In this document: in pieces, positions 6,186-63,958 of the stretch | How the letters are laid out: the number at the start of each line of letters is the position of its first letter | How positions within the stretch are numbered: the stretch's first letter is position 1 | Source: Octopus sinensis | Lineage: Eukaryota | DNA length: 64,000 nucleotides | NCBI RefSeq assembly: GCF_006345805.1 | Contig: NC_043001.1 | Coordinates: 103,230,001 to 103,294,000, forward strand | Reading direction: 5' to 3' | Notes under the pieces: model-generated | What the model saw: only the letters and a program-made list of their open reading frames with translations | Told to the model about the DNA's origin: nothing | The model's database searches: none | Position numbers and translations under genes: made by a program

Positions 6186-6189
6186 ATAC

Positions 6190-6392: not shown

Positions 6393-6427
<35 letters not shown>

Positions 6428-6500
6428 ATGTATGTATGTATGCATGCATGCATGCATGATTGCATGCATGTATGTATGTATGTATATATGTATGTATGCG
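6190..6500. repeat. (TATG)n/(TG)n compound microsatellite
   Basis: Direct reading. Similar arrays at 13365-13625 and 10770-10890. Confidence 0.97.
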
Positions 6501-12992: not shown

Positions 12993-13155
12993 CAGTGGTT
13001 CCCAGCTTTTTCACTACCAAGGACCCCTTTTATTGAAATGAGGTTTCTCACGAACCCAAGGGTATTGAAAGGTCTGTCAGCTTAACATTTTCACACACCC
13101 TACTACTACCTTGTGGACCACCAAGGGTCCGCGGGCCACAGGTTGGGAATCACTG
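12993..13155. mobile_element. hAT-type MITE
   Basis: CAGTGGTTCCCA / TGGGAATCACTG TIRs; 8-bp TSD CTCGACAC/CTCTACAC (1 mismatch). Confidence 0.75.
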
Positions 13156-13959
13156 CTCTACACTATAGTTAAAGACATTAGAACAAAAATATTAATCCCT
13201 ATTCGTGTCTGCCTGCCTGTTTGTCTGTCTGTCTCTTTCTCAATCTCTCTTTCTTTCTTTCATCTCTCTCTCTCTTGTCTCTTTTCTGTAGTTGTATTGA
13301 CATTCCTATTGAGGTACACACAGGTACATATATATCACTATGACAACGATATTATCTGTCAGCATGTATGTATGTATGTATGTATGTATGTATGTATGTA
13401 TGTATGTATGTATGTATGTATGTATGTATGTTTGTGTGTGTGTATGTATGTATGTTTGTGTGTATGTATGTATGTATGTATGTATGTATGTATGTATGTA
13501 TGTATGTATGTATGTATGTATGTATGTTTGTGTGTATGTATATATGTATGTATGTTTGTATGTATGTATGTGTGTGTTGTGTGTGTGTGCGCGCGTGTGA
13601 TTGTGCATGTGTGTGTGTGTGTGTACACGAGTTCACATTTCTCAACAAGATCATTAAAGAACTATTAAAAACAGGGGGTTGTGGCGAACCTTGCTGTACT
13701 CTTTCACCACAACTTTCTCTCACTCTTTCTTCCTGTTTCTCTTGTACCTGTATTTCAAAGGGCCAGCCTTGTCACACTCTTGTGCCACGCTGAATCTCCC
13801 CGAGAACTACATTAAGGGTACACATGTTTGTGGAGTGCTGAGCCACTTGCACATTAATTTCACAAGCAACATGTTCCGTTGATCGGATCAAATGGAACTC
13901 TTGTCGTCGCAACCGACGGAGTGCCACAATGATTATATATATATATATATATCTATATA

Positions 13960-19360: not shown

Positions 19361-20524
19361 TGTGTGTGTGTGTGTGTGTGGTGTGGTGTGTGTGTGTTAC
19401 AACAAGCAGAGTTGGTATTTTTAACATAATTTAACACTTGCAATGCGAAGAAGAGACATTTGCATCAATCGTATATGAATCCTTCATATAACTGCATCAT
19501 TGGCAAGTTCTCTCCGGTCGTAATATTTTAATATTTTATTCATGCTTAGCATAAACGTTCCCGTCACAATTCGCGGGGCAAACTTGAAAAGTAGAAACTT
19601 TGCCTTTCACAACACTATTTTCTCATTTGTTCGTTGATTCGAATGTGATCTCGCTGTGTCCTGTTGCTGAGGATGAGAACGTTACTGCTTGCCTTTCCTC
19701 TCTGTATTTTCGACTTCAATTGATCATTTCACATTCTGTTTCACATTCTGGCATTGTGGATGGAAAGTTCGAAGAGAGAAAATGAAGAATTGTATTGTTA
19801 TGGCCATCATTGGACAAGATGTCAACAAAATGGGAAACATATTTATGCCACAGAACCTCTCAAAACTAGAAACCAATATTTAAGCATTATCTAAGCCTAA
19901 TTAGGTTACCTATGAAGAAGAAAACCAAACAATACCAAGTAAGCGATCCCCACAGATCATGAATTCACAAACATTTTCCTCTTTACAAGAATGTTCACCG
20001 ACCTAGAATAACGAGACTAAGTTAGAAATTCACAATCGAGCATAACATATATGCATTCTCATCATCAGCTGCCCAAACATATATCACTGTGGTTTCGACA
20101 CCCGAGAAGGCCTCAAAATACTGTTCTTAGAGTTACTGTAGAAGGCGCAATGATATATGGATCTGAATTCTAGGCACTTAAGAAAGTAACAGAAAACAGG
20201 CTAGGGTGAACAACGTTTCTAGAGAACAAAATTCACCGATCAGAGTATTATAAAGGAAATATACCCTTATTAAAAGTAACCATCAAACACCGCAGACTTA
20301 AGTTTGTGGTACACCTGGTGGCGAAGGAAAAATATGTAGTTGTACGTTAAATATTACTATAATAAGCAACATGTGGTAGAAAATAAGAAGAGGCAGACCT
20401 TGTCGAACATGTGGCAGTGGTTCATGGAGGGTAGAAATCTTGGGAAAAATTGTGTTGCGGAAAAGATGGAGGACAGAAAAATGTGGAGGAGACAATAGAA
20501 TTGAGGTACGCTTGACAGGCTTAT

Positions 20525-21170
20525 ATGCATGCATGCAGACATATATACATATACACATACAAGCATACATACATTCACACACATACATACATACGTACAT
20601 ACACACACACTTACATACATACGTACGTACATGGATGCATGCATACATACACACACATACATACATACACACATACACACATACATACATACATACATAC
20701 ATACAAACATACATACACACACATACATACAAACATACATACATACATACACATACATACATACATACACACATACATACACACATACACACATACATAC
20801 ACATATACATACACACATACATACAAACATACATACACACACATACATACAAACATATATACATACATACATACACACATACATACACACATACATACAT
20901 ACATACATATACATACATACATACATACAAACATACATACATACACACATACATACATACATACACACACATACATACACATATACATACACACATACAT
21001 ACAACATACATACACACACATACATACATACATATACATACATACATACACACATACATACACACATACATACATACATACATACATACATACATACATA
21101 CATACATACATACATACATACATACATACACGCACATATATATACATACAAACAAACATGCATACAAGGC
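20525..21170. repeat. (CATA)n/(CA)n compound microsatellite, ~640 bp
   Basis: Direct reading; source of six spurious ORFs. Confidence 0.97.
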
Positions 21171-21620
21171 TAAATAAATTGGAAGGTATAATGAATAAAC
21201 GCTCTAATTGGTCAAAACAACTTTATAACGTTCGCATATTATCACAAATCGAACATAAATAAATATTTTTCGGTTTATCGAAATTATAAAATTATCCTCA
21301 TATGCATACAAGGCAACGTACCTACAAGTTTACGATTTTACACAAAAATCTAGAACTACTAGGTTTTCTTGAAAAAGTGCGAAAGGTGCAAATTGTCCGA
21401 ATGTATTCTATTGGTGGCACATTGAGGGTTTGTGTGACATTCGAAAGATTACCTGAGGTACTTGGATGTCTGCATCGTCAGTCCAACCGAGACCCTAACT
21501 CGACCCTATATATACACACGCCGGGAGCTCTCTGAACACCAAAGTCCTGTTGCTTTGTCAATGACAAGCTTGAACTCCCTGACGAGGAACTGAAACTCAA
21601 GAAAAATCATACATATATGC

Positions 21621-35735: not shown

Positions 35736-37029
35736 CGAGGGGCGTTCAATAAGTAATGCCCCTGACCCACTTCCCATATCAGTAGAGCAACGAAACTTGG
35801 CACAGTCATTAGTCTTTTTCTACATAGGAACCACCCAGAGTTACGCATTTCTCCCATCGTTTGATGCAGCTCTGGAGACCGTTTTTGTAGAAGACCCCAG
35901 CTTGGTCCTCCAACCAGGACGTGACTTCAGAAATCAAGGCAGCATCATCTGGGAAACGCTTTCCTTTCAAAAACAACTTAATGGCTGGGAAGAGGTGAAA
36001 ATCAGAGGGTGCAAGGTCAGGAGAGTAGGAGGGATGGGGGAAGAGTTCATAGCCGCACGCCTGTGCTTCTGATCTGGCGACGCGCGAGTTGTGGACCGGA
36101 GCGTTCTCCTGCAGGAGGATGATGCCTTTGCTGATCTTGCCCCGCCTCTTGATTTTGATAGCTTCTCTTAATTTCCTTAAAAGTGAAGCATAATAGGCTC
36201 CTGTAATTGTGGTACCCTTTGCCAGGAAATCTGTCATCACTACTCCGTCCTGGTTCCTGAAGATTGTGAGCATGACCTTGCCAGCGGAGGGCTGCACCCT
36301 TGCCTTCTTTGGAGGAGATGAGTCACGGTGCTTCCACTGCATTGACGGGGCTTTGGTCTCTGGATCATAGTGATGGACCCAGGTTTCATCCTGTGTAATC
36401 AGTCTTTTGAAAAAATTTGACTCATCTTCTTGGCATATCTCCAAATTCATCCTCGCGAACTCGACGAGTTCTTGCTTCTGGAAAGGTGTGAGCAACCTGG
36501 GAATCCATCTGGCAGACACCTTTTGCATATGCAAATGGTCATGAATGATAGTTTCCACAGACCCGGTACTAATCTTGACCTCATGGGCTATTTGGCGAAT
36601 AGTTATGCGTCGATCTTCCAAAATGGCAGCCTCAACTTGACGGACAGATGCCTCATCAATGGCAGAAGGGGGGGCAACCAGATCTGGGAGCTGTTTCCAC
36701 AGAGTTCCGATCATGTTTGAATTCACGATGCCAGCATTTTACAAGGTCATATGATGGGGCATCATCACCATAAGTTACTTTCATTTCATCAAAAGTCTTC
36801 CGTGGTGTGCATCCTTTCAAATACAAAAACCAGATCACTGTTCGACACTCAACAGGCTCCATTTCACACTTGATTCAGTTCAAACACCTGTAAATCAGAA
36901 ACCACAATTAGTTCAGAGCTGCTATTTGCCACTTAATCTATAGAGATATAAATAATTGCACATGCAAAATTTCAGCTAGATCAAACAACTGCAAGTGGGT
37001 CAGGGGCATTACTTAATGAACGTCCCTCG
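35736..37029 (-). mobile_element. Full-length mariner transposon (1,294 bp), frameshifted transposase
   Basis: TIRs CGAGGGGCGTTCAATAAGTAATGCCCCTGACCCAC with flanking TA. ORFs 36656-36862 and 35809-36726 carry WIPRLL, TQDETW, QENAPVH and YSPDLAPSDF. Confidence 0.93.
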
Positions 37030-46334: not shown

Positions 46335-47100
46335 GTAGTGTTGGTTTGCCACGTGGATATAGTTTTTAGTTCCATTTATTCTATTTCTCCATTCATAATT
46401 TTTGTGTTTATTTGTCTGTGTGGGGTTGAGTGGGTTTTTGGAGTATATGTTGAGGTTTATATGTATGTATAGGTATGTGTAAGTGGTGTGGGTATTTGTA
46501 TATGTCGTGGGTGTGTGGTTTACGTGTGTGTATTTGTGTGTGAATGTATAGGTTAAAGGGATTGCTATATAAGTATGTTATAGTGTTTAGTAAAGGGAGG
46601 TTTTATCATTTATGTTTTGTGAGTTTTAGCTTATGGTAGTTTTATAAAAGAATCCATTCATAATTTTTGTGTTTATTTGTCTGTGTGGGGTTGAGTGGGT
46701 TTTTGGAGTATATGTTGAGGTTTATATGTATGTATAGGTATGTGTAAGTGGTGTGGGTATTTGTATATGTCGTGGGTGTGTGGTTTACGTGTGTGTACTT
46801 GTGTGTGAATGTTTAGGTTAGGGGGATTGCTATATAGGTATGTTATAGAGTTTAGTAAAGGGAGATTTTATCATTATATGTTTTTATGAGTTTTGGTTTA
46901 TCATGGTAGGTTTGTTAAGGAATTCGTAGTAATTTGTGTCTATTTGCGATGTCTGTTGTTTTATTGCATTGTTTCATTCATAATTTTTAAGTAGTGTTCG
47001 TTTTACCAAGTGAATATAATTTTTAATTCCATTTATTCCATTTCTCCGTTCATAATTTTAAGTGATGTCCGTTTTCTAGAGCGTGAATGTGGGTTGTATG
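45780..47100 (+). repeat. G/T-rich degenerate tandem subrepeats within the PLE leader
   Basis: Recurring units such as TTCATAATTTTTAAGTAGTG..GCCACGTG and GTGTGTGGTTTACGTGTGTG..GGGATTGCTATATAGG. Confidence 0.75.
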
Positions 47101-49000: not shown

Positions 49001-49306
49001 GTAATACGTGACGAGTACAGCGCAGTTCACCTAAAAAATCACATCATTTCTCAAAAAAGTAGCCAAAAAACCACTTTTAACAACACTTTTTATGGATAAA
49101 TCAGCAAAATACCCTAATATTCATGCTATTTTACCGCATTTTTATAAATAATCCCTCAAATCCGTTTTTTAACCGAAGTTTTTCCAGAAATATCACCAAT
49201 AAAAAATAGCTCTCGATCGCCAACATTTTTAGAGGAGTCACGTGACACCTTCTAAATCATGTGACTCTATGACTCATCCATACGTTCACCGATCAGTCAC
49301 GTGACC
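49001..49306 (+). repeat. Left terminal inverted repeat of the virus
   Basis: GTAATACGTGACGAGTACAGCGCAGTTCACC...GTCACGTGACC is the reverse complement of 59986-60292. By eye the only difference is A6 vs A7 in one homopolymer. Confidence 0.95.
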
Positions 49307-49418
49307 TAACCCCTAAAAAATCATAAGTAAAAAAAAAAAAAAAATTTAGGTGTTGGAAAAAACAGTAAAAAAAAAAAATCTAGTCGAAAAAACCCAATCA
49401 AAATTTGTTCCTAAGAAA

Positions 49419-52400
49419 ATGGCCAAGCAGAAATTCCAAGATCTAATTTACCACGAAACATTCGAATTAAAATCTATAAATGAAATAGCAAAAAAAATTA
49501 AAATTAGGTTTTACCCAGTTAAAATTAAATTAGCTATTTTATGTAAATTTTATAGACCATCTGATGATAAGAAAGTAGAAAGATATTTTAATTTAAAACC
49601 TATGGTAATTAAAAGTGAAAACAATAAAACTAAATTATTCTATAGTACTACAAAACAATTTAATACTTGGGTTGAAGATGTACAATTAGCAGGGAGTGGA
49701 TTTATATTTTTAGGGACTGTTGAACTAATTTTAAAACAGCATAAAGTACAATTTTTAGAAGGGTCTAGTTATATACCATTAGGGTTTAAAAGTCATTGTA
49801 TTATCAATGTAAAGAATACTGATAATAAATGTTTCTTATATTCAATTCTAGCAAAGTTATACCAACCAGAAAAAGATCCACAAAGAGTAACTAAGTATAA
49901 AGAGTACTTAGATTTCATTAATATGGATAATATAGAATATCCTGTAAAAGTATCAGATATAGCTAAAGTAGAAAAACAAAATACCTTCCTTAGTATAAAT
50001 GTTTTTTCATTAGATAATTATAAAGAAAAAGAATCTTTGTATCCTGTATACATTTCAAATTATAAAAAAAGAAAAGAAGTAGTAGATCTGCTATTATTGG
50101 CAAAAGGTGAAGTAACTCATTATGCCTTAATTAAAGATATCAATAAATATTTCTCAGATAAGGTAAATAGAAATAAAAAAGTGTTATGTAGAAGATGTTT
50201 AACATTACATAGATCACAAGAAGCATTAGATAGGCATCAAGCATTATGTGAAACAAATTCACCAGCTAGAACAGTAATGTCTAGTTCAGGAGTAACAAGG
50301 TTTATTAATCCTCATTTCAAATCTAGATTACCATTCGTGATTTATTCTGATTTTGAAGCAACAAATATACCATTTAAAAAACTAACAGAAGATAACACAA
50401 GAGCACTAGCAACACAGAAAATAAATAGTTTTGGTTTATATTTTAAATCTGATTATCCAGATCTAGTTTCCTCAGAATATATTACTTATACAGGAGAAGA
50501 TGCAATTGAAAAATACATCCAAAATATCTTATTATTTTATGAATCTGTAGATGATATTTTTAGAAGTAAATCAAAAGCAATATTAACAAAAGAAGAAAAA
50601 GTAGAATTTGAAAATGCTACTAAATGCTATATCTGTAATAATGAGTTTAATAGTGATAATAAAATAAAAGAACATTCACATTTATCAAATAAATATAGAG
50701 GAGCAGCATGTAAAGAATGTAATTCTAAAGAAGGTAGATCATCTAAAATATTACCTATTCTATTCCATAATGGATCAAATTATGATTTCCACTTTCTAAT
50801 TTCTGAACTAATGAAATATGAAACTAGATATAGAAAAGTAAAAGTGTTAGCAAGAACAGCAGAAGAATATATTTCAATAGATTTTGGTAACCAATCATTA
50901 AGATTAAGGTTCTTAGATTCATACAGATTTTTAGCAAGCAGTTTAGAGGGAATTGTAAAATCATTAAACTCCTTTCCAATCCTAGAATCTGAAATGTTTG
51001 ATACTTTTGATTATGAAAAAGAAGAAATAATAACTTCTAAATATAAAACAGATCTTCTGAAAACAAAAGGAATTTACCCTTATGAATACATTACATCTTT
51101 AGAAAAACTAAAAGAAAAAGAACTTCCTAAATTTATTAAAAATAAATCAGTTCAACTAGATAAGAAATTATACAATATTCCAAAAGATCATTTTCTCTAT
51201 AAATTTATTTTAAAATGGTATAATTATAAAAGAGTTTCTCCATGGCATTCTTCTTTAAAAAGAGAAGATATAACAGAAAAAGATTACCAAAAAGCATTAA
51301 AAGTTTGGGATTATTATGATTGTAAAACTATTCAAGATTATCATAATCTATATTTAAAATCTGATGTTTTACTTTTAGCAGATGCATTTGAACAATATAG
51401 AAAATTTAATTTAACTTATCATCAAATTGATCCTTGTTATTGTTATACAAATCCTGGATTAACATGGCAATGTGGGTTAAAATATACTGATATAAATTTA
51501 GAAAACTTACAAGATGAAGATATGTTTCTCTTATTCGAAAAGGGAATTAGAGGAGGATTTTCAGGTGTATTAGGAAGAAGATACGTTAAAGCAGATTCAG
51601 AAAATCAATTACTTTATCTAGATGCAAATAATTTATATGGTTATGCTATGTCTCTTCCATTACCAACTTCTGATTTTCAATGGGAAGAAGATTTAAACTA
51701 TTTTAAAAAAGTACCAAAAGGAAGGGGTTGTATTATAGAATGTGATTTAAAATATGTTTCAAAAGAAGAAACAAAGAAATTTCCTTTAGCTCCAGTTCAT
51801 TTTCAACCTACTATAGATATGCTTTCAGAATACCAATTAAAACTATTAGGAGAAAAAGCAACTAAGAAAGAAACAGTAGAAGACGCTAAGTTGATGTTAA
51901 CATTACAAGATAAAACAAATTATGTTATACACTATAAAATATTAAGAAAATTTATAGAATTAGGAATGGAAGTAACTAAAGTTCATAGAACTATTTCTTT
52001 TATAGAAAAACCTTGGTTAGCAGATTATATTAATTTTAATACAGAAAATAGAAAGAAAGCAAAAACTAACTTTGAAAAAGATTTATTTAAACAATCTAAT
52101 AATGCCTTCTTTGGTAAAACAATGGAAAATGTAAGAGATAGAAATAATGTAGAATTATTCAATAATGCAGATATAATTAAAAAGAAAATAAATAGTCCTA
52201 AGTTTTATAACTCTGTAATCTTTAATGAAAGCCTAGTAGCAATTATAAGTAAAAAAGGAAGTGTGGTATTAAACAAACCAATTTATTTAGGACAAGCAAT
52301 TCTAGATTTATCAAAGTTACTTATGTACGAATTTTATTATGATATAGTAGAAAAGGTATGGCCTGATAATGAAATACTTTATAGTGATACAGATTCAATT

Positions 52401-52919
52401 GTATTATCTATTAATTCTAAAGATGATATCTATAAAACTATGAAAGAAAAAACTCTAACAACAAACTTTTCAGAAGATCATCCTTTATATTTAAACAATG
52501 AAAGTATCCAGAATATATTTGATACTTCTGCTTATCCAACTGATCACTTCTTATATGATGGAAAAAATAAAAAAGTAATAGGAAAATTTAAAGATGAATT
52601 ATCTGGAGAAAAGATGTTAGAATTTATAGCATTAAAAAGTAAAAGTTATTCTTATTCTACTGAAAGTTCTACAGACTCCTCTACAGAAGAGTTTAAAAAA
52701 CTAAAAGGAAGCTCTAAAGCAACAATTAAAAAAGATATTAAACTAAAAGATTTTAAACATGCTCTATTCACTAGTACAAAACAATATAATAATAACTACT
52801 GTTTAAACTCTAAGAAGCATGAAATGTACCTACAACAAGTAAAAAAGATTTCAATTAATCCATTCGATAATAAGAGATTTATTCTTGATAATGGAATTGA
52901 TACTTTGCCATTCAGATAA
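49419..52919 (+). CDS. polB: Protein-primed family B DNA polymerase (pPolB) with N-terminal extension, Zn finger and embedded endonuclease VII-like motif
   Basis: The ORF track starts at 49350 (GTG); the first ATG is at 49419. Exonuclease motifs: YSDFE, FHNGSNYDFHF, YLKSDVLLLAD. Polymerase motifs: YLDANNLYGYAM, KQSNNAFFGK, YSDTDS. Also CRRC..H...C and CYIC...EHSH...YRGAACKECN. Confidence 0.95.
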   Translation: MAKQKFQDLIYHETFELKSINEIAKKIKIRFYPVKIKLAILCKFYRPSDDKKVERYFNLKPMVIKSENNKTKLFYSTTKQFNTWVEDVQLAGSGFIFLGTVELILKQHKVQFLEGSSYIPLGFKSHCIINVKNTDNKCFLYSILAKLYQPEKDPQRVTKYKEYLDFINMDNIEYPVKVSDIAKVEKQNTFLSINVFSLDNYKEKESLYPVYISNYKKRKEVVDLLLLAKGEVTHYALIKDINKYFSDKVNRNKKVLCRRCLTLHRSQEALDRHQALCETNSPARTVMSSSGVTRFINPHFKSRLPFVIYSDFEATNIPFKKLTEDNTRALATQKINSFGLYFKSDYPDLVSSEYITYTGEDAIEKYIQNILLFYESVDDIFRSKSKAILTKEEKVEFENATKCYICNNEFNSDNKIKEHSHLSNKYRGAACKECNSKEGRSSKILPILFHNGSNYDFHFLISELMKYETRYRKVKVLARTAEEYISIDFGNQSLRLRFLDSYRFLASSLEGIVKSLNSFPILESEMFDTFDYEKEEIITSKYKTDLLKTKGIYPYEYITSLEKLKEKELPKFIKNKSVQLDKKLYNIPKDHFLYKFILKWYNYKRVSPWHSSLKREDITEKDYQKALKVWDYYDCKTIQDYHNLYLKSDVLLLADAFEQYRKFNLTYHQIDPCYCYTNPGLTWQCGLKYTDINLENLQDEDMFLLFEKGIRGGFSGVLGRRYVKADSENQLLYLDANNLYGYAMSLPLPTSDFQWEEDLNYFKKVPKGRGCIIECDLKYVSKEETKKFPLAPVHFQPTIDMLSEYQLKLLGEKATKKETVEDAKLMLTLQDKTNYVIHYKILRKFIELGMEVTKVHRTISFIEKPWLADYINFNTENRKKAKTNFEKDLFKQSNNAFFGKTMENVRDRNNVELFNNADIIKKKINSPKFYNSVIFNESLVAIISKKGSVVLNKPIYLGQAILDLSKLLMYEFYYDIVEKVWPDNEILYSDTDSIVLSINSKDDIYKTMKEKTLTTNFSEDHPLYLNNESIQNIFDTSAYPTDHFLYDGKNKKVIGKFKDELSGEKMLEFIALKSKSYSYSTESSTDSSTEEFKKLKGSSKATIKKDIKLKDFKHALFTSTKQYNNNYCLNSKKHEMYLQQVKKISINPFDNKRFILDNGIDTLPFR

Positions 52920-52944
52920 ATAAAGTTTATTTCTTTTAAACAAA

Positions 52945-53361
52945 ATGACTTATGAAAAGTTTTGTACCAAGTGTGAAAAAAGTAAAACAGAAAAAGAATT
53001 CTATAGTAACCTAAATCTTACTTATTGTAAAAAATGTATAAGAATAATATCTAAGAATTATTATAAAAAAAATATGAAACAGCAACTTATAAAACTATGG
53101 ATATCTAGAGGAATAAAAACTAATGATTTTGATGAATTATACGATAAATATTCATCTTCTACTAATTGCTATTTTTGTGATATATCTTTTGATAATACAG
53201 TAAAAAATAAAAGAAGATGCTTAGATCACTGTAATCTCTCTGGTTCTCCTAGATTTATTATTTGTAGTAAATGTAATATAAATACTCTTCCTAAATTAGA
53301 TACCCTAAGAAATAAATTACATTTAGAATTACATAGATATTTTAACCGTGTACTAAGGTAA
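52945..53361 (+). CDS. Zn-ribbon plus T4 endonuclease VII-like (HNH-fold) nuclease, 138 aa
   Basis: N-terminal CTKC...CKKC. C-terminal CYFC...RCLDHCNLSGSPRFIICSKCN matches the endonuclease VII pattern CxxC...DHxH..G..R..LC..CN. Confidence 0.75.
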   Translation: MTYEKFCTKCEKSKTEKEFYSNLNLTYCKKCIRIISKNYYKKNMKQQLIKLWISRGIKTNDFDELYDKYSSSTNCYFCDISFDNTVKNKRRCLDHCNLSGSPRFIICSKCNINTLPKLDTLRNKLHLELHRYFNRVLR

Positions 53362-53367
53362 CTTTTT

Positions 53368-53994
53368 TTAATATTTAATTAGTGTAATCGTAGCTAAGGA
53401 GTAATTCCATGTTTTAAGCACAGATTTACTAAAATCGAAATAAGAACTATTCATATGTTTTACTGTTATTTCTTTACTATCAAACTTAAAATTACCTGAA
53501 ATAAATTTATAATAAGGGGATTCAAAAGTAGTTAAAGTCCAGAAATAAGAAATATTAGGTTTTACATAACTATAACTTTCAATCATTCTATGTTTTAAAG
53601 AAGCTGTAGAAGAGGTAAAAATAACAATATCTGGAGTAAAATTAATTGTAAAAGTACCTGATCCAGTAAATGTGATATCTTGTCTTAATCCTTTAAAATC
53701 TATATAATTCCTATTTTCTTGGTATTTAGAATCTACATATTCTTTATTTGCTGCATCTGTAGGATTAAAAGGACTTCCAACATTAATAGGTGTTCTTCCA
53801 TTTAGATTCCCAGATGTCCAATCAGCGTATTCTTTTGTAGCTGCATCTGTCTTTTTTACAGGCCATTCAAGATTACTTATCCCATAATCCTTCATATCAA
53901 TAGCTCCAGAAGCAACACCATTTTTAATATAATCAGTATTTTTTATTTTATTATTTTGTGATTCTTGATCAATAGGTCTTCCAAATATATCCAT
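53368..53994 (-). CDS. Putative virion fibre/spike protein, 208 aa
   Basis: Begins MDIFGR. Has two stalk-like repeats (P..KTDAATKEYAD, P..PTDAANKEYVD) of the type seen in phage/Polinton fibres, and a beta-rich C-terminal head. Confidence 0.6.
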   Translation of the reverse strand: MDIFGRPIDQESQNNKIKNTDYIKNGVASGAIDMKDYGISNLEWPVKKTDAATKEYADWTSGNLNGRTPINVGSPFNPTDAANKEYVDSKYQENRNYIDFKGLRQDITFTGSGTFTINFTPDIVIFTSSTASLKHRMIESYSYVKPNISYFWTLTTFESPYYKFISGNFKFDSKEITVKHMNSSYFDFSKSVLKTWNYSLATITLIKY

Positions 53995-54064
53995 TTCTTT
54001 ACACTTAATTTTAAAAGGAAAAAAGTAAATTACTAAAAACTACTTAGTTTTTAGCTACCATAAA

Positions 54065-54808
54065 TTAAATAATTATTGCTTTAAACTTATTTTTATACCT
54101 TCCATTATTCTTCTTTTTTGTTGTATCTATTGTAAGAAATCCGTAATCTTCACTCCATACTTTATTACAAAGTTTTCTAAATTCTTGATAACTCATATCA
54201 TCATAAGCATAGTCCTCGAATATAAATCTAAGTGATCTCTTATCTTGATAAAATAATATAATTAAATTTGCATTTTCTCTTATAGTTTGTTTAGGTAGTT
54301 TAAAGAAGTTTTGTGAAATATAAAAACAATCAATATTTGAATGTCTTCCTCTTGTATAATAATCTTCACATTTTACTTGTTTTTCTCCAATAACATCATC
54401 AAAGATAATAAGATTCTTTTTAGATCTATCTACTTCAGCAGGATCCATAATATCTTCATTCTTATCAAAGAAAGTAACTGTTACTTCAGGAGTAAATTCT
54501 GCATTCTTTTTTAAATAATCTACTACTATATCAGAATCTACATCTTGGTTTTGAAATAGTTTTAATACTCCATCTTTAGGAAGTATCTCTAAATTCTTTA
54601 ATAATTCGTATTCTTTTTGAAATAAAGATTTACCATAAACCATTAAATTATTATAATCTAAAAATCCTTTTTGCAATAATAAATTCATTAAAAGATTTGT
54701 TTTTCCACATCCTGATTTCCCTACTATAATTCCTCTGATACTCCTTGGTAGATTTATATGATTATTTCTTTTTATTTTATGTCTGCTAGATAAATTTTCT
54801 ATCTCCAT
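54065..54808 (-). CDS. A32/FtsK-like genome packaging ATPase, 247 aa
   Basis: Walker A GKSGCGKT, Walker B LIIFDD, and the TRGRHSNIDCFYISQNFFKLPKQTIRENAN signature. Confidence 0.93.
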   Translation of the reverse strand: MEIENLSSRHKIKRNNHINLPRSIRGIIVGKSGCGKTNLLMNLLLQKGFLDYNNLMVYGKSLFQKEYELLKNLEILPKDGVLKLFQNQDVDSDIVVDYLKKNAEFTPEVTVTFFDKNEDIMDPAEVDRSKKNLIIFDDVIGEKQVKCEDYYTRGRHSNIDCFYISQNFFKLPKQTIRENANLIILFYQDKRSLRFIFEDYAYDDMSYQEFRKLCNKVWSEDYGFLTIDTTKKKNNGRYKNKFKAIII

Positions 54809-54833
54809 TTTTCTAGGAATGTTTAATTCTAAC

Positions 54834-56093
54834 CTAACTAATTAGATTAAATCTTCTATCTGATGAATGAAGACTAAGTTCGATATCAGATAAAAGTGTT
54901 GCAAAAACTTCTACACCTGTTCCTGGGGCTGAATTAAAAGTTGCTTTAATTTGGATATCCATATTACTAACTCTAGTTCTATCATCATATTTAGAAATAT
55001 CTATTACATAGATAGGATAAAGGGATTTAAAGGTGATATAAGAGAAAGAAGGTGGTTCATCAGTATCATAAAAATTCTTTTTGAAATCATAAGATTGTTT
55101 AAAGATTCTAGAGTATTTTTCTTCAGGATAATCAATTTCTATATCATGATTAGGATATCTTCTTGTATTAATCTCTACAAGTATCTTTTTTAGTTCTAGA
55201 TTAGAAAAGTTAGATTTACTAAATAGATTATTCTTTTGCATCCCAATTACAATATATCTAGGTGTTCCTGTAGTATTTTGTAGATTCCAACTTAGATTAG
55301 TAGAATTAGCAGCAGGAATAAAAGTTTGTGTGTTTCTACCTCTGAATAGAATCTTTAATATCTTCTTTTTATCAATCTGATCATAGAGTTTAATTTCTGT
55401 TTCTAGTGAAGGTTTAATAACTGGGATAAATAAAGACATCTTAGAAAGAGATAATTTAAAATCTGTTTTATTTTCTCCTTTCATCACTTGAAGAGATTCA
55501 TGATTTACTAATCTTTTTAATCTAAATGTTTGTTGTACTCCATACAAAACTTTTTTATAATCTTCCATAAACCCAAAGATATGATCCAGAGGAACATTAA
55601 AACTAAATTTCTTAAATCTAGATCTTAATACCATAGAATTATTTGATTCATTTGCATTATAATCAATATCAGGAAGCCATGACATACTTAATCCATTAGA
55701 AGAACTTTGTGGAATAGAATATTTAAACATCCCTAACATAGAAGTAGTTTGTCCTGGTCTGTCTATATCTTCTACTACATTCCCATTAATAAGATAAGTC
55801 ATTCTTTCAAAGAGATACATCATAGAATTATTAATCAAACTAACTTTTTCATAATCTGCTGCAGCAATATCTGTTCCATCAGACTTTGTTAGTTCTCCTT
55901 CAAAATAGAGATAAGCATCAGAAGGAAAAGTGATTAAATCTTGTTGCTGAATTACAATTTCTTTATTCCCTGTTGTATTAAGATTAGTAGTATTAATAGG
56001 AGGAAACTCTACGTACTCAAATTCCTTTATACTATTATCAGAAAAGAGAGAATGTTCACTATCATAGATATCAAAGATTTCTTTAGTATTCAT
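54834..56093 (-). CDS. Major capsid protein (double jelly-roll), ~420 aa
   Basis: Track ORF 54834-56156; likely start is the ATG at 56093. Size, position beside the ATPase, and motifs (EFEYVEFPP, FYFEG..., PRYIVIGMQ, RRYP, PIYVIDIS) fit the Polinton/adintovirus MCP. Confidence 0.85.
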   Translation of the reverse strand: MNTKEIFDIYDSEHSLFSDNSIKEFEYVEFPPINTTNLNTTGNKEIVIQQQDLITFPSDAYLYFEGELTKSDGTDIAAADYEKVSLINNSMMYLFERMTYLINGNVVEDIDRPGQTTSMLGMFKYSIPQSSSNGLSMSWLPDIDYNANESNNSMVLRSRFKKFSFNVPLDHIFGFMEDYKKVLYGVQQTFRLKRLVNHESLQVMKGENKTDFKLSLSKMSLFIPVIKPSLETEIKLYDQIDKKKILKILFRGRNTQTFIPAANSTNLSWNLQNTTGTPRYIVIGMQKNNLFSKSNFSNLELKKILVEINTRRYPNHDIEIDYPEEKYSRIFKQSYDFKKNFYDTDEPPSFSYITFKSLYPIYVIDISKYDDRTRVSNMDIQIKATFNSAPGTGVEVFATLLSDIELSLHSSDRRFNLIS

Positions 56094-56124
56094 TTTCTTA
56101 GCGAGTTTTTTAGTAAAAAAAATA

Positions 56125-56451
56125 TTAATTAATGAATTTAATAGAACTTCCTGCAAACATATTTTCTATAACTGAAGGATCATAAGAAGGTTGCTCTAAT
56201 TTAGGTTGTTTAACTCTTCTAGGTTTTGCTTTAGGTTTTATCTTATTAGATATAGCATTAACTATTTCTTCTGCACCCTTAGATGCAGCAGCTTTAATAG
56301 CTGTTTCTGCTCCTGTTTTCATTAAAGATTTTGCTGTTGTAGAGGCTAAAAGTTTTGCAATAGCACTCATTATTCCTTCACCCTCCTGGGTAGCTTGTTT
56401 TATTTTTTCTTGTTTTTCTTGTTTCTTATTTTTTCTCTTTTTAATATACAT
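56125..56451 (-). CDS. Small basic core/membrane-active protein with amphipathic helix (cupiennin-like), 108 aa
   Basis: K-rich N-terminus, then GEG followed by IMSAIAKLLASTTAKSLMKTGAETAIKAAASKGAEEIVNAI, an amphipathic helix. Confidence 0.55.
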   Translation of the reverse strand: MYIKKRKNKKQEKQEKIKQATQEGEGIMSAIAKLLASTTAKSLMKTGAETAIKAAASKGAEEIVNAISNKIKPKAKPRRVKQPKLEQPSYDPSVIENMFAGSSIKFIN

Positions 56452-56501
56452 TTTAATTAGTACAAAATAAGTTATAAAAAAGTAAAATTTAGTAAATTAA
56501 C

Positions 56502-57257
56502 TTAGGTAAAAAGTAGGTTGTTTATTTTAAGAAAATCTACTTTTTCTATCTTACCAGTTTCATAAAGATATTTTAAAATATCAGAAATTTCATTATTTAC
56601 ATTATGATTTCCTGCTTGTCTTGCACCTAGTAAAAGTTCTAATCTTTGGGTTAAATATTTAGGATCAGAAATAACAATTCCTTCACCTGCTATCATATCA
56701 TTTTCTTCTATTTCTTCTATAATAGGTTCAAAAGTTCTTGTTTGATTTTGTATCATTTTATAAATTTTATAGTCATTAGAATTAAATCCTCCCCTTCCTC
56801 TTGAATTACTAAAAAAGTTTAATTTAGATGCTAGGGTATAATAAGTACTTTTTTCTTCATTAGATAAATCTGTAATACGAATATCCTTATCTCTAGAAAT
56901 TAATTTATAAAGATTTTCAGTCATTGGAATTTCTTCGTTATTTATAATTAGATTATCTCCTTTAAAGAAAAGTGGTTCATCTTTTAAATAAACTCTATCC
57001 CCAATTAATTTAAAAAAGGTATTTAGATTATTTTTTAGTGTTCCTTTTGCTAAATATTTAGACCCTAAATTACTTGGAGAAACTGTAATCGGAAGAGTTT
57101 CTGATTCTTTTAAACTTTCTATTGCTGAGATAATTGGTTTTTGCTGTTGCATTAAATCTTGATAATCATAAAAATCATTCATCTTTTTTTCTTTTGAGTC
57201 ATGATATAATTTCTTTCTTAAAGATAACACTTTTTTCATCTTATCTAGTTCAGTCAT
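56502..57257 (-). CDS. Conserved Polinton-type protein of unknown function, 251 aa
   Basis: Intact ORF in the structural block. The C-terminal AGEG...LTQRLELLLGARQAGNHNVNNEISDIL motif is of the kind recalled from Polinton ORFs. Confidence 0.6.
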   Translation of the reverse strand: MTELDKMKKVLSLRKKLYHDSKEKKMNDFYDYQDLMQQQKPIISAIESLKESETLPITVSPSNLGSKYLAKGTLKNNLNTFFKLIGDRVYLKDEPLFFKGDNLIINNEEIPMTENLYKLISRDKDIRITDLSNEEKSTYYTLASKLNFFSNSRGRGGFNSNDYKIYKMIQNQTRTFEPIIEEIEENDMIAGEGIVISDPKYLTQRLELLLGARQAGNHNVNNEISDILKYLYETGKIEKVDFLKINNLLFT

Positions 57258-57271
57258 TTCTTTAGAATAAA

Positions 57272-57679
57272 TTATAATAAATAATGTAAAAGATCTTTAA
57301 ATTGCTTTATAGTTGTAGGATTCTTATTTAAAATAAATATACAGAGATGTCCACAAATAACAGAATTATCTGGTTGTAATATTAAATTATTATAGAATAC
57401 CCCTTTATAAGAGTTTACATTTCTAATATAAGTTAAGAATTCTGGAGGTGGAATTAACCCATAAGAATCAAAATATAGTACTAAAGAATTCTTTTTAATC
57501 CAACAAGTCCAATGTGTTCCTTGATTTTCTGATGTATCTAAATTTAGTACACCTGATTCTTTTTCTTTAGGAGTAATATCTTTTAATTCATCTCTCATAA
57601 AACACCCTCTATAGGCTTTATTTTTTACTAATTTATTCATATCTAAATTTGTTAGTGATTTATAAAATATTGGATCCAT
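57272..57679 (-). CDS. Adenain-like (adenovirus C5-type) cysteine maturation protease, 135 aa
   Basis: VLNLD...GTHW, YFDSYG, LQ...CGHLC supply the catalytic H, D, Q and C residues. Confidence 0.9.
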   Translation of the reverse strand: MDPIFYKSLTNLDMNKLVKNKAYRGCFMRDELKDITPKEKESGVLNLDTSENQGTHWTCWIKKNSLVLYFDSYGLIPPPEFLTYIRNVNSYKGVFYNNLILQPDNSVICGHLCIFILNKNPTTIKQFKDLLHYLL

Positions 57680-57709
57680 TTCTTTTACTTTATATTTTTA
57701 ATTAATTTA

Positions 57710-58303
57710 TTAGAATAATTTAATAATATCTCCTATCAGTGGAACATTTTTAAGGAAATCTAGAAATCCATCTCCTTTCCTCAAATACAATCCTTCACCG
57801 CTATAAATCCCATTATTTTTAAACATTCCAGGTCTTCCTATAAAAGGAACAATCTTAAATCCATTTCCCTCACAACAACTTACTTTAAACAAACTAGATC
57901 CTTTTTTAAGATAAAGTCCACTTCCAATATTACAATTACCACTTCCCATTACTTTTTGTACACCTGTTTGTGCTAACCCAGAAAGAGCTCCTACTCCTAA
58001 TGCTGGAAGAATTTTACTAGCAATCACTGGTAAAAATCGTGATGCAAGTCCTGCAAGCATACCAAGAAATCCACCATGCTTAATATTATATTTTACTTGT
58101 GCATCTGATAAAGTTAGTTTTACTCCTTTTTGTTTTATGATCGCATCATTAACTTTTTTTAGTTGTGGTACAGTAAGATAAATATCTGACCCACCTTGAA
58201 CTAAATCAGGGTAAGCAAATATAAGTACTATCTGACCTGACTGTTTTTCTATTTTTTCTTTTTGTTGTTCTGAAACATAAACTGAGAATTTTTTGTAAGC
58301 CAT
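57710..58303 (-). CDS. Glycine-rich putative core/membrane-penetration protein, 197 aa
   Basis: HGGFLGMLAGLASRFLPVIASKILPALGVGALSG hydrophobic/amphipathic segment, plus several GxG motifs. Confidence 0.6.
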   Translation of the reverse strand: MAYKKFSVYVSEQQKEKIEKQSGQIVLIFAYPDLVQGGSDIYLTVPQLKKVNDAIIKQKGVKLTLSDAQVKYNIKHGGFLGMLAGLASRFLPVIASKILPALGVGALSGLAQTGVQKVMGSGNCNIGSGLYLKKGSSLFKVSCCEGNGFKIVPFIGRPGMFKNNGIYSGEGLYLRKGDGFLDFLKNVPLIGDIIKLF

Positions 58304-58335
58304 TTTTTAAAAGAAATAAAATTAGTTAAAAGAAG

Positions 58336-59064
58336 TTATTCTTTTAAAATAAATCTCAAATCCACAAGCTCTCTGTTATTATTAATTAATTCACCATTTT
58401 GATCTGTAATTCTAATATTAATTCTTGAAATATTTCTTGAAGAAGTTGGAAGAAAAACTGGATTAATAATATCTTTATTTATCTTAAATCCGAATTGAAC
58501 ATTAGGAAAGAAGGAATAAATGATTGGTTTTTGAACTCCATTAACTGTTGATCCTTCAATGTTACTAACTTCTACATTTATAATATTTACTGAAAGAATA
58601 TCAACAACATTATCTGAAGTTGTTGGAGAGGATTGAATTAAATTATTTTTGAAACCTAAAATCTTTTTTAATTTATCATTTAAAGTTACACTAACAAAAG
58701 GTGTTTTAAAAGTAATTATTGAATGTCCTGTTGTTTCTACTGGTTTTACTGAAAATACATCATCATCTGTAACTCCTTTATCTTTAATTTCATCTACTAA
58801 ATAATCGTTTAATTGTGTAATATCATATGATCCATTTGGAATATTAATATCCATTAAAGAATTTGCTGATTTTAAAGAAATACTACAATCTACCATATTA
58901 TGAATTGCATTATAAGTTGAAATATAATCTAATGCCATTCTAGGAATATTTTCAAATTCCAAGGCTGGTGAAAAATTTATTGTATATTCTGTTCCTCTAA
59001 AAGATGCTCCTATCATTTCATTTTTCTTTTGCTTTACTTTTACATTCAGATATTCTTGATCCAT
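58336..59064 (-). CDS. Minor capsid protein (penton, single jelly-roll), 242 aa
   Basis: IPNGSYDITQLN, LKKILGF, NVEVSNIEGSTVNG...IIYSF and ISRINIRITDQNGELI match the Polinton penton pattern. Confidence 0.8.
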   Translation of the reverse strand: MDQEYLNVKVKQKKNEMIGASFRGTEYTINFSPALEFENIPRMALDYISTYNAIHNMVDCSISLKSANSLMDINIPNGSYDITQLNDYLVDEIKDKGVTDDDVFSVKPVETTGHSIITFKTPFVSVTLNDKLKKILGFKNNLIQSSPTTSDNVVDILSVNIINVEVSNIEGSTVNGVQKPIIYSFFPNVQFGFKINKDIINPVFLPTSSRNISRINIRITDQNGELINNNRELVDLRFILKE

Positions 59065-59081
59065 TTTTAAAAGAAATAAAA

Positions 59082-59453
59082 TTAACTGTATATCCCTAAA
59101 CCTAAAGTATTTTTTGCTCCTATTACGTTTCTAACTATATTTCTTTCTACCCATTGTTTTGGATTTGATACTTTTAAAGACTCTAATTTTTTTAACATTT
59201 GGGTATCGCATATTTTTCTATTTTTGCTATCTCTATAACAAATATCATGTTTCATACAAATTCTATCTAATCCATTTCTAGGAATAGAATGTGGAAGAGG
59301 ATTATCATTTTCATCTAATCTTTTTTCTAATTTGGTTCCAGGACCACAAAACTTATATCCTGGTAGGTGCATTTCAAATGGTAAATCTGTCCATCCATTT
59401 CCTTTATATTTTTTATTAATTTGTTTTGTTTTATTTCCTTTTTTATAATACAT
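59082..59453 (-). CDS. Parvovirus VP1u-type phospholipase A2 (PLA2X), 123 aa
   Basis: Ca-binding loop GYKFCGPGT and catalytic NGLDRICMKHDICY (HDxxY). Confidence 0.88.
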   Translation of the reverse strand: MYYKKGNKTKQINKKYKGNGWTDLPFEMHLPGYKFCGPGTKLEKRLDENDNPLPHSIPRNGLDRICMKHDICYRDSKNRKICDTQMLKKLESLKVSNPKQWVERNIVRNVIGAKNTLGLGIYS

Positions 59454-59486
59454 TTTTAAATGTTCATTTTTAGTTTTTAAAACTAA

Positions 59487-59687
59487 TTAAGTTTGTTTAG
59501 TAACTTTTTTTAAGCAGTTTACTTCTGTAAATGTTCTAAGTTGTTTTAGTATTTTTTGTAATTTTTCTAGGTATTCCTCTTTTAAATAATTATCTTTTAT
59601 ATATTTTATTTTCTCTTTCAGGTATTTTATCATCTCACTAAGTTGTTTTATTTTTGTAATAAATTTCGTCAAAAATTCTTCTCTCAT
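59487..59687 (-). CDS. Small basic helical/coiled-coil protein, 66 aa
   Basis: ATG-initiated ORF in the same-strand gene array with the same A-rich start context. Confidence 0.5.
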   Translation of the reverse strand: MREEFLTKFITKIKQLSEMIKYLKEKIKYIKDNYLKEEYLEKLQKILKQLRTFTEVNCLKKVTKQT

Positions 59688-59702
59688 TTTCTAGGGATTT
59701 TT

Positions 59703-59921
59703 TTAGCATTTTCTTTTTTTAAAATAATCAGGATTTCTTTCCTTAAATTCGTTAAATGCTTTTTTATATTTTTCTTTATTTAACTGATAATGCTTCTGTT
59801 TTCTTGGTCTATCACAATCTATACATTTTCCTCTATACCCATCTACACAATTTTTTTCTTTATGGAATTCAGAATGCAGTTTGGTCTTTTCACAATATTT
59901 GCAATATTTTTCATTGATCAT
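59703..59921 (-). CDS. Small Zn-ribbon protein, 72 aa
   Basis: CKYC...K...EF......CIDC resembles the N-terminus of the 138-aa ORF at 52945. Confidence 0.6.
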   Translation of the reverse strand: MINEKYCKYCEKTKLHSEFHKEKNCVDGYRGKCIDCDRPRKQKHYQLNKEKYKKAFNEFKERNPDYFKKRKC

Positions 59922-59985
59922 TTTTTAAGGAATAATTTTGAGTAGATTTTTTTTAACATAAAAATTTAATTTTTTTTAAGGGTTG

Positions 59986-60292
59986 GGTCACGTGACTGAT
60001 CGGTGAACGTATGGATGAGTCATAGAGTCACATGATTTAGAAGGTGTCACGTGACTCCTCTAAAAATGTTGGCGATCGAGAGCTATTTTTTATTGGTGAT
60101 ATTTCTGGAAAAACTTCGGTTAAAAAACGGATTTGAGGGATTATTTATAAAAATGCGGTAAAATAGCATGAATATTAGGGTATTTTGCTGATTTATCCAT
60201 AAAAAGTGTTGTTAAAAGTGGTTTTTTGGCTACTTTTTTTGAGAAATGATGTGATTTTTTAGGTGAACTGCGCTGTACTCGTCACGTATTAC
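59986..60292 (-). repeat. Right terminal inverted repeat of the virus
   Basis: Ends ...GCGCTGTACTCGTCACGTATTAC(T); mirror of the left TIR. Confidence 0.95.
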
Positions 60293-61608: not shown

Positions 61609-62524
61609 CAATAATAGTTCCCTATTAGGTTACTTTAGTTTAGTTTAAATTAGTTTAGATAATATATTTTTTGGTATGTAGTCTAGGCTTTAATTATAGT
61701 TAGTCTTTATTGATATTTCTTTGTTTTAATTAGTTCATTTTTAATGTATATTAATATAACAGTTTATGGTATGTTAAAACTTTAATAATTTATATTAGAT
61801 TTTTTTATTTTCTTTATTATATATTTTTTTATTTTATTTTATTTTATTATGTATTTTTATTATGCATTTGTTATATGTATTTTGGAGGATATATTTATAT
61901 GTTGATGGGTGTTATTTAGTGGTGTTTTTATTGAGTTTTGTATGTATGTGTGAATGTTTACGATCCCTTTGTTTTTTGTTTTTTATTTGGTATGTTGAAT
62001 TGACAGATTTTATTTGGGTATTGTCTGTTATAATAAAGTATACACACCCATAACAAATATAAGTGCCCACTTCATTCGCGCGTACCTGGAATTGCATGTG
62101 AGCCTCAACATATACACCAAACGGCCACTCCATCACCATACGGACGAATAAATACATACATCCCCAAAAATGGGCGTAATCCCACTCACACCAATCATAT
62201 GTATACAATTATACACACTAGAATAATACATAACTAACCCAAATATACAGAACATATTAAAAATCACCAACAAACCACCATCACAAATGAAACCTACACC
62301 CATACAATGACAAAACTCCCCCCTCCATACCCAATTTACACCCACATAGCAATCCCAATATATTCATCCATACATGGACGCACGTGCGTGAAGCACATGC
62401 ACACAATAAATACGTACAACCCCCCAATACACACTCATATACATACGTATCAAGCTCGACATCCACAGCAATACGCTTACACCCACTCACACCCAGATGG
62501 GTGAATTGCACAACCAGGGAACGC

Positions 62525-63958
62525 ACACACACACGTGTGCGTATTTTGATTGTGCAACTCGCCCATATGCATGTATGCGGGCGCGATTACATTGTTGCAC
62601 ATATCGAGCCCAACTAGCATGCATATGTACATGTGAGGGGGTACACGTACATGCCGTGCGCGTGTACCCCCTGCATTTATACCCGTGCGTGAATATACAC
62701 ATGGAGACTACCACACAGGTACAAATGTGTATAGTAATGGGAGCCCCATCACTACACTCAATGTATAATCTCACCCATCCGCACGGATGTGAAAGTGAAT
62801 CTCCGGTGTATATGTTGAGGCTTATATGTAGCGCTGTGGAGGTGAACGTCGTTGAAATTGTGAATGAATGGGTGGAGTTGGGAATTGTAACCGGGTGGTG
62901 GGCTAGCGTTGCTTGGAATTGGGAATGGAATAGTGTAGTAGTAAGGCAGGCATCGAGAATAGATTGGGTTACTGCAAGTTGTTTGTTAGAGCTGCTAAGA
63001 TGAGCTAAAGCTCATAATTGTATATAATAATTTATTATGGTAGTTTTATTAAAGAATCCATTCATAATAAATTTTTTTTAAGTAGTGTTGGTTTGCCACG
63101 TGGATATAGTTTTTAGTTCCATTTATTCTATTTCTCCATTCATAATTTTAAATGACGTTTACTTTCCATGGCGCGTATTCTTTTTTTACATAAGTTATAT
63201 TTCTATGGTAACGTAATTTTGGTTTGATTTTTTAACGGCTAAGAATTTAATTTCACTTCATAATTTGAAACTGACTTGTAAGTATGTATTTTATTTCTCC
63301 TTATGTCATATTGTTATTTTTGATATTCTGGTTAATTACGATGTATTTAATGTTGTTTTTTATTGGAGTGTTTATGTATATGAGATTGTGTGTGAGTTTT
63401 TAGTTGTATAATTTATTTATCTGTATGAGTGTGGGTGTGTAAATATTGTTGTATATATCGAGTTTAGTGAGTATGTATATGCGTATATGTGAGGGAGTAT
63501 ATGTATCTGTTGTGTGTGTGTGTTTTGCGTGTGTGTGTGTTTGTGTGTGAATGTGTATATGGGTTTGTTATTTAGGTTTTGGGATGTATGTGTTAATTTG
63601 TCTGTGTGGGGAGGGAGTGGGTTTTTGGTGTATATTGAGGTTTATAAGTTAGTATAGGTATGTGTATAAGTCGTGGGTCTGTGGTTTACGTGTGTGTTTT
63701 TTGTGTGTGAATGTTTAGGTTAGGGGGATTGCTATATAGGTTTGTTATAGAGTTTAGCAAAGGGAGATTTTATCGTTATATGGTTTTAAGAGTTTTGGTT
63801 TATCATGGTTTTTTTAGGGAATTCGTGGTAATTTGTCTATTTTCGATGTTGGTTGTTTTATTACATTGTTTCATTCATAATTTTTGAGTGGTGTTCGTTT
63901 TGCCACGTGAATATTATTTTTAATTCCATTTATTCCATTTCTCCATTCATTATTTTAA
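62525..63958 (+). repeat. Direct repeat copy 2 (~1.43 kb, pseudo-LTR)
   Basis: Near-identical to 44901-46334. Confidence 0.93.

Follow-up and report, generated by a model that had tools for sequence, protein, structure and literature searches.

In this study, a 64-kb stretch of chromosome CM016863.1 of Octopus sinensis (assembly GCA_006345805.1), hereafter called the window, was analysed, and a virus-like unit of 11,292 bp was delimited at positions 49001-60292. The unit is best read as a virus genome of the Polinton/adintovirus type that is complete, is associated with molluscs, and was recently endogenised. It is an intact member of this group that lacks the group's defining integrase, and it was inserted without a target-site duplication. 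We consider it somewhat more probable than the sum of all other explanations (about 0.6) that the integrase was lost before entry and that the complete genome was then recently captured by host end-joining. As far as the searchable literature shows, this is the first element of the Polinton/adintovirus kind to be described in a cephalopod; no Polinton-type element in an octopus was described in the literature searched.

Structure and age of the virus-like unit

The unit is bounded by terminal inverted repeats (TIRs). Inverted-repeat blocks were observed at 49001-49058/60235-60292 (100% identity) and at 49053-49320/59972-60239 (99%), and the arms overall span 49001-49320 and 59972-60292. When the arms were compared by global alignment, the first 306 nt contained no substitutions and a single homopolymer length difference of 1 base, and the likeness faded beyond 306 nt. 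The left TIR was assigned to 49001..49306 (+ strand) and the right TIR, which is 1 base longer in the homopolymer run, to 59986..60292 (- strand). Positions 49001 and 60292 are the exact limits of the inverted repeat, as the adjoining outward bases are not complementary. The TIR length of 306 nt fits the Polinton range of 100-1,500 bp. Two TCACGTGAC palindromes, which have the E-box core CACGTG, are found in each TIR (49238-49306 and the mirror positions in 59986-60292), and a CATGTG variant is also present in each. In each inward-facing gene block, these motifs lie just upstream of the first gene and are candidate promoter or origin elements.

Thirteen open reading frames (ORFs), all uninterrupted, are separated by spacers of 6-70 bp and account for 95.7% of the unique region. 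At this base composition a stop codon is expected once per 12 codons; hence, open frames of 66-1189 codons are not due to chance, and the probability of the 1189-codon frame arising by chance was about 6e-46. The genes form two inward-facing blocks that begin at the TIRs and meet at a 6-bp spacer, with the polymerase gene and a small endonuclease VII (Endo VII) gene on the + strand and 11 genes on the - strand. A first, sequence-only reading of this stretch had proposed a compact, intact Polinton/adintovirus-type genome without an integrase, having near-perfect TIRs of ~306 bp and 13 uninterrupted ORFs that fill the space between them. All of these features were borne out. The unit length falls below the range of 13-25 kb reported for Polintons (PMC10748475), and the unit is also smaller than the 16.9-kb free relative described below.

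The GC content was 26.0% in the unit as against 36.9% in the host part of the window, and that of free relatives was 24-30%. Because the TIRs are free of substitutions, none of the 13 genes is broken, and the GC content is like that of the free relatives and far from that of the host, the entry of the unit is regarded as recent, in agreement with what had been supposed from the sequence.

Absence of the integrase gene

Pfam searches detected no integrase domain of the retroviral type (rve) in any of the 13 ORFs. Furthermore, when the integrases of seven relatives, 45-95% identical to one another, were used as tblastn queries against the whole window, neither an rve gene nor a remnant of one was found (best E value, 0.12). 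The lack of an integrase noticed in the sequence-only reading was thus confirmed by both searches.

A metagenome scan with an alignment of the major capsid protein (MCP) confirmed 353 relatives. Two loci are the closest ones for which gene context is available: L004, found in whole-genome sequencing data for the nudibranch Okenia hiroi (PMC7995900), and L005, from GCA_044670265.1. Their identity to the window is 58-59% for the MCP, 70% for the packaging ATPase, 61-64% for the protease, and 63-68% for phospholipase A2 (PLA2). Both loci are collinear with the window except for an rve gene of 215-230 aa, which lies between the PLA2 gene and a gene of 244 aa. In the window, the PLA2 gene (59082..59453, - strand, 123 aa) and the following gene of 242 aa (58336..59064, - strand) are 17 bp apart, and it is between these two genes that the rve gene of the relatives sits. 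The same order of PLA2 and then rve was also observed in the more distant L006, L011/L012, and L014, and one of the integrases includes a chromodomain. The L006 integrase matched rve and Chromo in Pfam with E values of 1.9e-11 and 2.4e-6, respectively, and the rve ORFs of the relatives pass the Pfam threshold. When a relative was defined as readable at the PLA2 junction if the locus contained PLA2 and at least 1.2 kb of downstream sequence, rve was present in every readable relative (19/19).

Five long relatives without an rve match were considered as possible integrase-less genomes and were rejected, since two of these contigs stop short of PLA2 and the other three consist of degraded or truncated pieces of the MCP gene. 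In two metagenome contigs, the capsid gene of the family is split into two ORFs (L081, 390-1715; L084, 1254-2579) and the sequence around it is ORF-poor; they probably represent endogenous copies that have decayed. One relative, L043 (JGI contig Ga0209458_1000372), is a complete free linear genome of 16,929 bp, in which TIRs of ~1.1 kb extend to both contig ends and which carries genes for rve, PLA2, ATPase, MCP, polymerase, and protease. No common motif was found between its termini and those of the window unit, and IMG/VR scans with the MCP and the polymerase returned no relatives.

Since all 19 readable relatives carry rve, the absence of rve in the window is a derived loss and does not mark an old integrase-free lineage. 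Accordingly, the proposal in the sequence-only reading of a distinct, "minimal" non-integrating lineage did not hold: the gene set and order of the unit are those of integrase-bearing viruses.

The integrase gene was not the only segment to be lost. The PLA2 of the relatives starts with a DUF5679 zinc ribbon, which is homologous to the N-terminus of the integrase of L001/L002 (E values of 1e-8 to 1e-10), whereas the PLA2 of the window has no zinc ribbon. This homology was noted on comparing L005 39-1280, L011 3626-5125, and L001 6496-7446; the rve ORF just downstream of PLA2 in the relatives is without such an N-terminus. This arrangement suggests that PLA2 and integrase in the relatives may share an exon or use alternative splicing. 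Consequently, two separate integrase-related segments are missing from the window, one on each side of the retained PLA2, the domain of which is full-length with intact motifs. Two clean losses, a tidy 17-bp spacer, and an intact PLA2 resemble the outcome of evolution in a replicating genome and not that of random decay.

We also considered whether the 251-aa protein (56502..57257, - strand) or another ORF of the virion module is a hidden recombinase, and this was rejected. All of the window genes between PLA2 and the ATPase, these two included, have homologues near rve in L004/L005, and a homologue of the 72-aa zinc-ribbon gene adjoins rve in L001/L002. As ORFs 47% identical to the 251-aa protein sit alongside rve in L004/L005, this protein is not a substitute integrase. 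A family profile of the 251-aa protein gave nothing useful against PDB.

Insertion site in a Penelope-like retroelement

[quoted passage not shown] The frame is broken by the nested unit and by at least one further interruption. Both this insertion into a retroelement ORF and the absence of a target-site duplication, as well as the Endo VII/HNH domains described below, go beyond what had been noticed earlier.

The two host pieces were each compared separately, unjoined, with uninterrupted relatives. In the alignment with the Argonauta protein, the left piece ends at residue 405 and the right piece begins at residue 411, and five residues of the window span this gap of five. In all five uninterrupted relatives (5/5), 15 residues lie between two conserved motifs; the window pieces contribute 8 and 7 residues, in the same frame. 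Furthermore, DNA alignments to the O. sinensis paralogue L010 extrapolate the two flank ends to the adjacent bases 6327 and 6328. No target-site duplication was therefore recognised: the flanks differ, and no bases were gained or lost relative to the five uninterrupted paralogues and the L010 DNA. As Polintons leave duplications of 5-8 bp (PMC10748475), an rve integrase, acting either in cis or in trans, is unlikely to have been the inserter.

As for the retroelement itself, its GC content is 18-22%, and it is related to proteins of the octopods Argonauta hians, O. bimaculoides, and O. sinensis (P0093-P0097, L010). The RefSeq name of these relatives, "GATA zinc finger domain-containing protein 14-like", is probably due to their Asn-rich low-complexity stretches. 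A YxDD motif of the RT type is readable in the left host piece, the C-terminal domain has a homologous counterpart in the intact relative P0094 (E value, 8e-18), and an HTH_animal domain is annotated on the relatives, whereas Pfam scans of the retroelement gave no RT or GIY-YIG match. The likeness to Penelope-like elements (PMC8557442), which concerns the host element only, consists in a single ORF with an RT followed by a GIY-YIG-like domain; the differences are that the host element is extremely AT-rich, has no Pfam RT match, and has so far been seen in octopods only. It thus appears to represent an AT-rich Penelope-like family confined to octopods. The idea that the AT-rich block as a whole is one foreign unit was rejected, because the retroelement family is resident in octopods and low GC is typical of the virus lineage.

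Replication genes

The largest ORF encodes a DNA polymerase B of the protein-primed type (pPolB) of 1189 codons (49350..52919, + strand). All exonuclease and polymerase motifs are present: Exo I-III, A, B, C, and KxY are invariant in an alignment of 17 sequences. Seventy-three polymerase relatives were found, the more distant of which, at 28-39% identity, carry PF03175. The window polymerase itself gave no direct polymerase match in Pfam or PDB, and a family profile searched against PDB likewise gave nothing useful. A predicted structure of residues 96-300 (pLDDT 84.6) was compared with PDB using Foldseek, and about 45 of the top 50 matches were OTU deubiquitinases, with weak individual E values of 0.035-2.4. 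An invariant Cys and an invariant His were found at the expected OTU catalytic positions; hence, approximately residues 96-270 were assigned as an OTU-like domain, which is followed by a C2H2 zinc finger at about residues 280-300.

Between Exo I and Exo II, the polymerase contains an Endo VII/HNH insert (aa 413-464, nt 50586-50741) that was detected with both Pfam and PHROGs. Its Cys and His residues are invariant, and the insert is kept across the family, including the free genome L043. It resembles the HNH/VSR nuclease inserts of pPolB2 polymerases (PMC10748475). Downstream of the polymerase gene, a stand-alone Endo VII/HNH protein of 138 aa with an N-terminal zinc ribbon is encoded (52945..53361, + strand; Pfam and PHROGs). 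This family gave 949 matches, most of them 100-180 aa long, the best being a 140-aa protein with 60% identity. Since the stand-alone protein is only 33% identical to the polymerase-embedded domain over 46 residues, it is not a copy of that domain.

At the other end of the unit, next to the right TIR, a zinc-ribbon protein of 72 aa (59703..59921, - strand) is 48% identical to the product of a small gene directly upstream of the polymerase in L001/L002. It is followed by a coiled-coil-like ORF of 66 aa (59487..59687, - strand) for which no relatives were found. Neither the stand-alone Endo VII nor the 66-aa ORF had a detectable counterpart in the related loci examined.

The window polymerase is 48-49% identical to those of L001/L002, in which no relationship of the capsid module to that of the window was detected, and only 32-34% identical to the polymerases of all MCP-family relatives (L006-L043). 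These identities provide evidence that the replication and virion modules may have been exchanged between elements, and module exchange has been reported for these viruses (PMC11071296, PMC10748475).

Virion genes

The double-jelly-roll (DJR) MCP (54834..56093, - strand) was identified by Pfam (PF21738, DJR-like_dom; 1e-29). An AlphaFold model of the capsid protein built from 14 relatives (pLDDT 77.8) matched the capsid proteins of iridovirus, PBCV-1 (chlorovirus), mavirus, Sputnik, and PRD1 in Foldseek, with E values down to 5.6e-15. In BFVD, the model also matched many predicted DJR proteins, including entries named "Adintovirus sp." and "MELD virus sp.". The packaging ATPase of the A32/FtsK type (54065..54808, - strand, 247 aa) matched Pox_A32 (3.3e-7), and the PLA2 described above is of the parvovirus type (PF08398, 2.3e-10).

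The protein of 135 aa encoded at 57272..57679 (- strand) was assigned as an adenain/Ulp1-like cysteine protease using a family profile searched against PDB. The top matches of this four-sequence profile were African swine fever virus (ASFV) S273R (E value, 0.0019) and adenain (0.028), scores that are weak and consistent with the assignment, and the His, Asp, Gln, and Cys residues are invariant. A fibre- or spike-like protein of 208 aa (53368..53994, - strand) contains two motifs of the phage tail-fibre type (6e-8), a weaker match, and its N-terminus is 41% identical to the ORF following the ATPase gene in L004. The 242-aa protein is a conserved virion-module protein in the gene position of the minor capsid (penton) protein; its family profile found no solved structure in PDB. 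Thus, of the functions that had been read from the sequence, those of the MCP, A32 ATPase, PLA2, and pPolB were confirmed, those of adenain and fibre stand on weaker matches, and that of the penton was not matched in PDB. Look-ups of the window protease and PLA2 by exact match gave no result in a collection where the MCP is the sole gene predicted for this part of the chromosome.

Two further proteins of this module were characterised by position and composition. The small basic Ala-rich protein of 108 aa (56125..56451, - strand), which is conserved in L005 and L007-L009, is probably a core or minor virion protein. The 197-aa protein (57710..58303, - strand), which is 51% identical to its homologues in L004/L005 and has a Gly/Ala/Leu-rich hydrophobic helix, is a candidate membrane-active virion protein.

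Host part of the window

Outside the virus-like unit, the sequence resembles animal DNA and is rich in microsatellites. It contains a mariner-type transposase ORF of 305 aa (35809-36726, - strand; PF01359, 4e-20) and a tandem duplication of 265 bp at 46388-46901. Spurious long ORFs arising from microsatellite-like repeats were observed at 6150-6767, 13111-13668, 20298-21262, and 62000-63000; they consist of Cys/Met/Tyr/Val or His/Thr/Tyr runs on opposite strands.

Origin of the integrase-less locus

Judging from the homologies described above, the virus would have replicated as linear double-stranded DNA (dsDNA), primed by protein from the TIRs by the OTU-PolB fusion. The genome would have been packaged by the A32/FtsK ATPase into a DJR capsid matured by the adenain-like protease, and PLA2 would have aided cell entry. 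We infer that the integrase was lost in the virus, prior to its entry into the octopus genome; if so, the insertion would therefore not have been catalysed by an integrase. Instead, a break in the Penelope-like retroelement may have been repaired by the host with the linear DNA joined into it over its full length, end to end, through double-strand-break repair, and such a capture by end-joining would have left no target-site duplication. The accidental endogenisation supposed in the sequence-only reading fits a route of this kind.

Several points weigh against this explanation. The evidence for an integrase-less variant rests on one locus, which is single copy as far as seen, and the search for relatives yielded no second one without an integrase. 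The very closest relatives (69% MCP identity) are on 2.3-kb contigs that end short of the PLA2 junction; data sets that contain nearest relatives are SRR9969973, ERR12921340/1, SRR13555242, and GCA_044670265.1. The result of zero duplication was obtained with paralogues, whose identity is 38-55% at the protein level and 66-74% at the DNA level, and not with an empty allele. Moreover, if a linear genome capped by protein was captured with its two ends complete and with no loss of target, this would be unusually clean for end-joining.

The main rival explanation is that an integrase-bearing genome was inserted and that later deletions removed rve and the zinc ribbon. Such a course of events would agree with the finding that rve is present in all readable relatives, by which the loss is derived, and with the decay that endogenous copies undergo, of which the degraded L081 and L084 are examples. 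However, even if an integrase had been present, the absence of a target-site duplication makes it an unlikely inserter, and two separate clean deletions around an intact PLA2 domain would be required in a unit whose 10.2 kb of coding sequence is otherwise undamaged and whose TIRs are free of substitutions. Hence, we regard loss after insertion as unlikely. A replacement of the integrase by the stand-alone Endo VII/HNH protein, which would have cut the target and led to a homing-like insertion free of duplication, was judged quite unlikely. The insertion is indeed very precise at both ends, and the gene for this protein has no detectable counterpart in the related loci examined; against this, there was no sign of target specificity or of a second insertion, and small Endo VII/HNH genes that stand alone occur commonly as selfish passengers (949 relatives). 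In addition, the polymerase-embedded HNH co-occurs with rve across the family, and therefore the HNH domains here are not in general substitutes for the integrase.

The absence of a duplication of 5-8 bp, as left by the rve integrases of Polintons (PMC10748475), also bears on the idea that the unit is a non-autonomous deletion derivative for which a related element or a co-infecting virus provided the integrase in trans. Integrase-less transposon derivatives usually spread in this way, and the related integrases are well conserved (45-95% identical) and might act on related ends. However, no other cephalopod match to the capsid family was obtained in the protein search, and a detailed repeat annotation of O. 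vulgaris includes no Maverick/Polinton class (PMC13282606); mobilisation in trans was thus considered very unlikely. Finally, the base composition foreign to the host and the single copy seen would be expected if free viral DNA, as a contaminant, had been misjoined into the chromosome during assembly. Such an artefact is exceedingly improbable, because the junctions consist of the exact viral termini and the adjacent bases of one retroelement ORF, in frame across the unit, which a chimera would not give.

Taken together, these findings favour loss of the integrase before entry followed by recent capture of the complete genome by end-joining. A broader and more tentative proposal, which we hold to be possible but doubtful, is that a mollusc lineage of the adintovirus type gave up its integrase and yet remains a complete autonomous virus, equipped with an OTU-PolB that looks active, the whole virion module, and the stand-alone HNH nuclease as an addition, the octopus locus being a chance endogenisation without an integrase. 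Under that proposal, the integrase-less virus may still circulate in cephalopods, a natural infection of which is deduced solely from the insertion itself.

Comparison with known systems

The locus uncouples, in one concrete case, the loss of the integrase from presence in an animal genome, and it documents a way, independent of an integrase, in which a virus of this kind entered the genome of an animal. Endogenous copies of these viruses need not, accordingly, reflect integrase activity.

The unit shares pPolB, a DJR MCP, an ATPase, a protease, and TIRs within the known range with Polintons/Mavericks (Polintoviricetes; PMC10748475). It differs from them in having no integrase and no 5-8-bp target-site duplication, in being below 13-25 kb (PMC10748475), and in being single copy as far as seen instead of a repeated family. 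The HNH-type insert of the polymerase and the exchange of polymerase modules are shared in particular with the pPolB2 group of molluscs, nematodes, and oomycetes (Jeong et al. 2023, PMC10748475).

With adintoviruses (proposed Adintoviridae; Starrett et al. 2021, PMC8502044; PMC11071296), the unit has in common a midsize linear dsDNA genome associated with animals. An OTU-PolB, a putatively hexon-type MCP, adenain, an ATPase of the FtsK/PacK type, and PLA2 (Alpha type) are further adintovirus features found in the unit (PMC8502044, PMC11071296). An rve integrase with a chromodomain is treated as present in all adintoviruses (PMC8502044, PMC11071296), whereas the unit lacks rve and the C-terminal chromodomain, is only 11.3 kb long, and has an extra stand-alone Endo VII. 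This comparison was made by published criteria; our sequence searches returned no named adintovirus references.

The lack of an integrase is shared with Adenoviridae and with the integrase-less MELD viruses of Hydra and Anelosimus (PMC8502044; PMC11161782), as are a linear dsDNA genome, a protein-primed PolB, a DJR capsid, adenain, and a packaging ATPase. These MELD viruses, found in Hydra and in a spider, have no detectable OTU domain (PMC8502044; PMC11161782). The OTU domain of Adenoviridae and MELD polymerases is inactivated or undetectable, whereas the OTU-like domain of the window keeps its invariant Cys and His. Furthermore, adenoviruses encode a separate terminal protein, whereas the N-terminal region of the window protein is fused to the polymerase and no separate ORF resembling a terminal protein was recognised; the unit is one third as long as an adenovirus genome. 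Adenoviruses presumably descended from polintons that lost the integrase and in which the OTU domain became inactivated (PMC11161782). The octopus unit offers a living-sequence analogue of the step from an integrating polinton to a non-integrating, adenovirus-like virus, and if an autonomous integrase-less lineage does exist, it would repeat independently the integrase loss that presumably went with the descent of adenoviruses from polintons.

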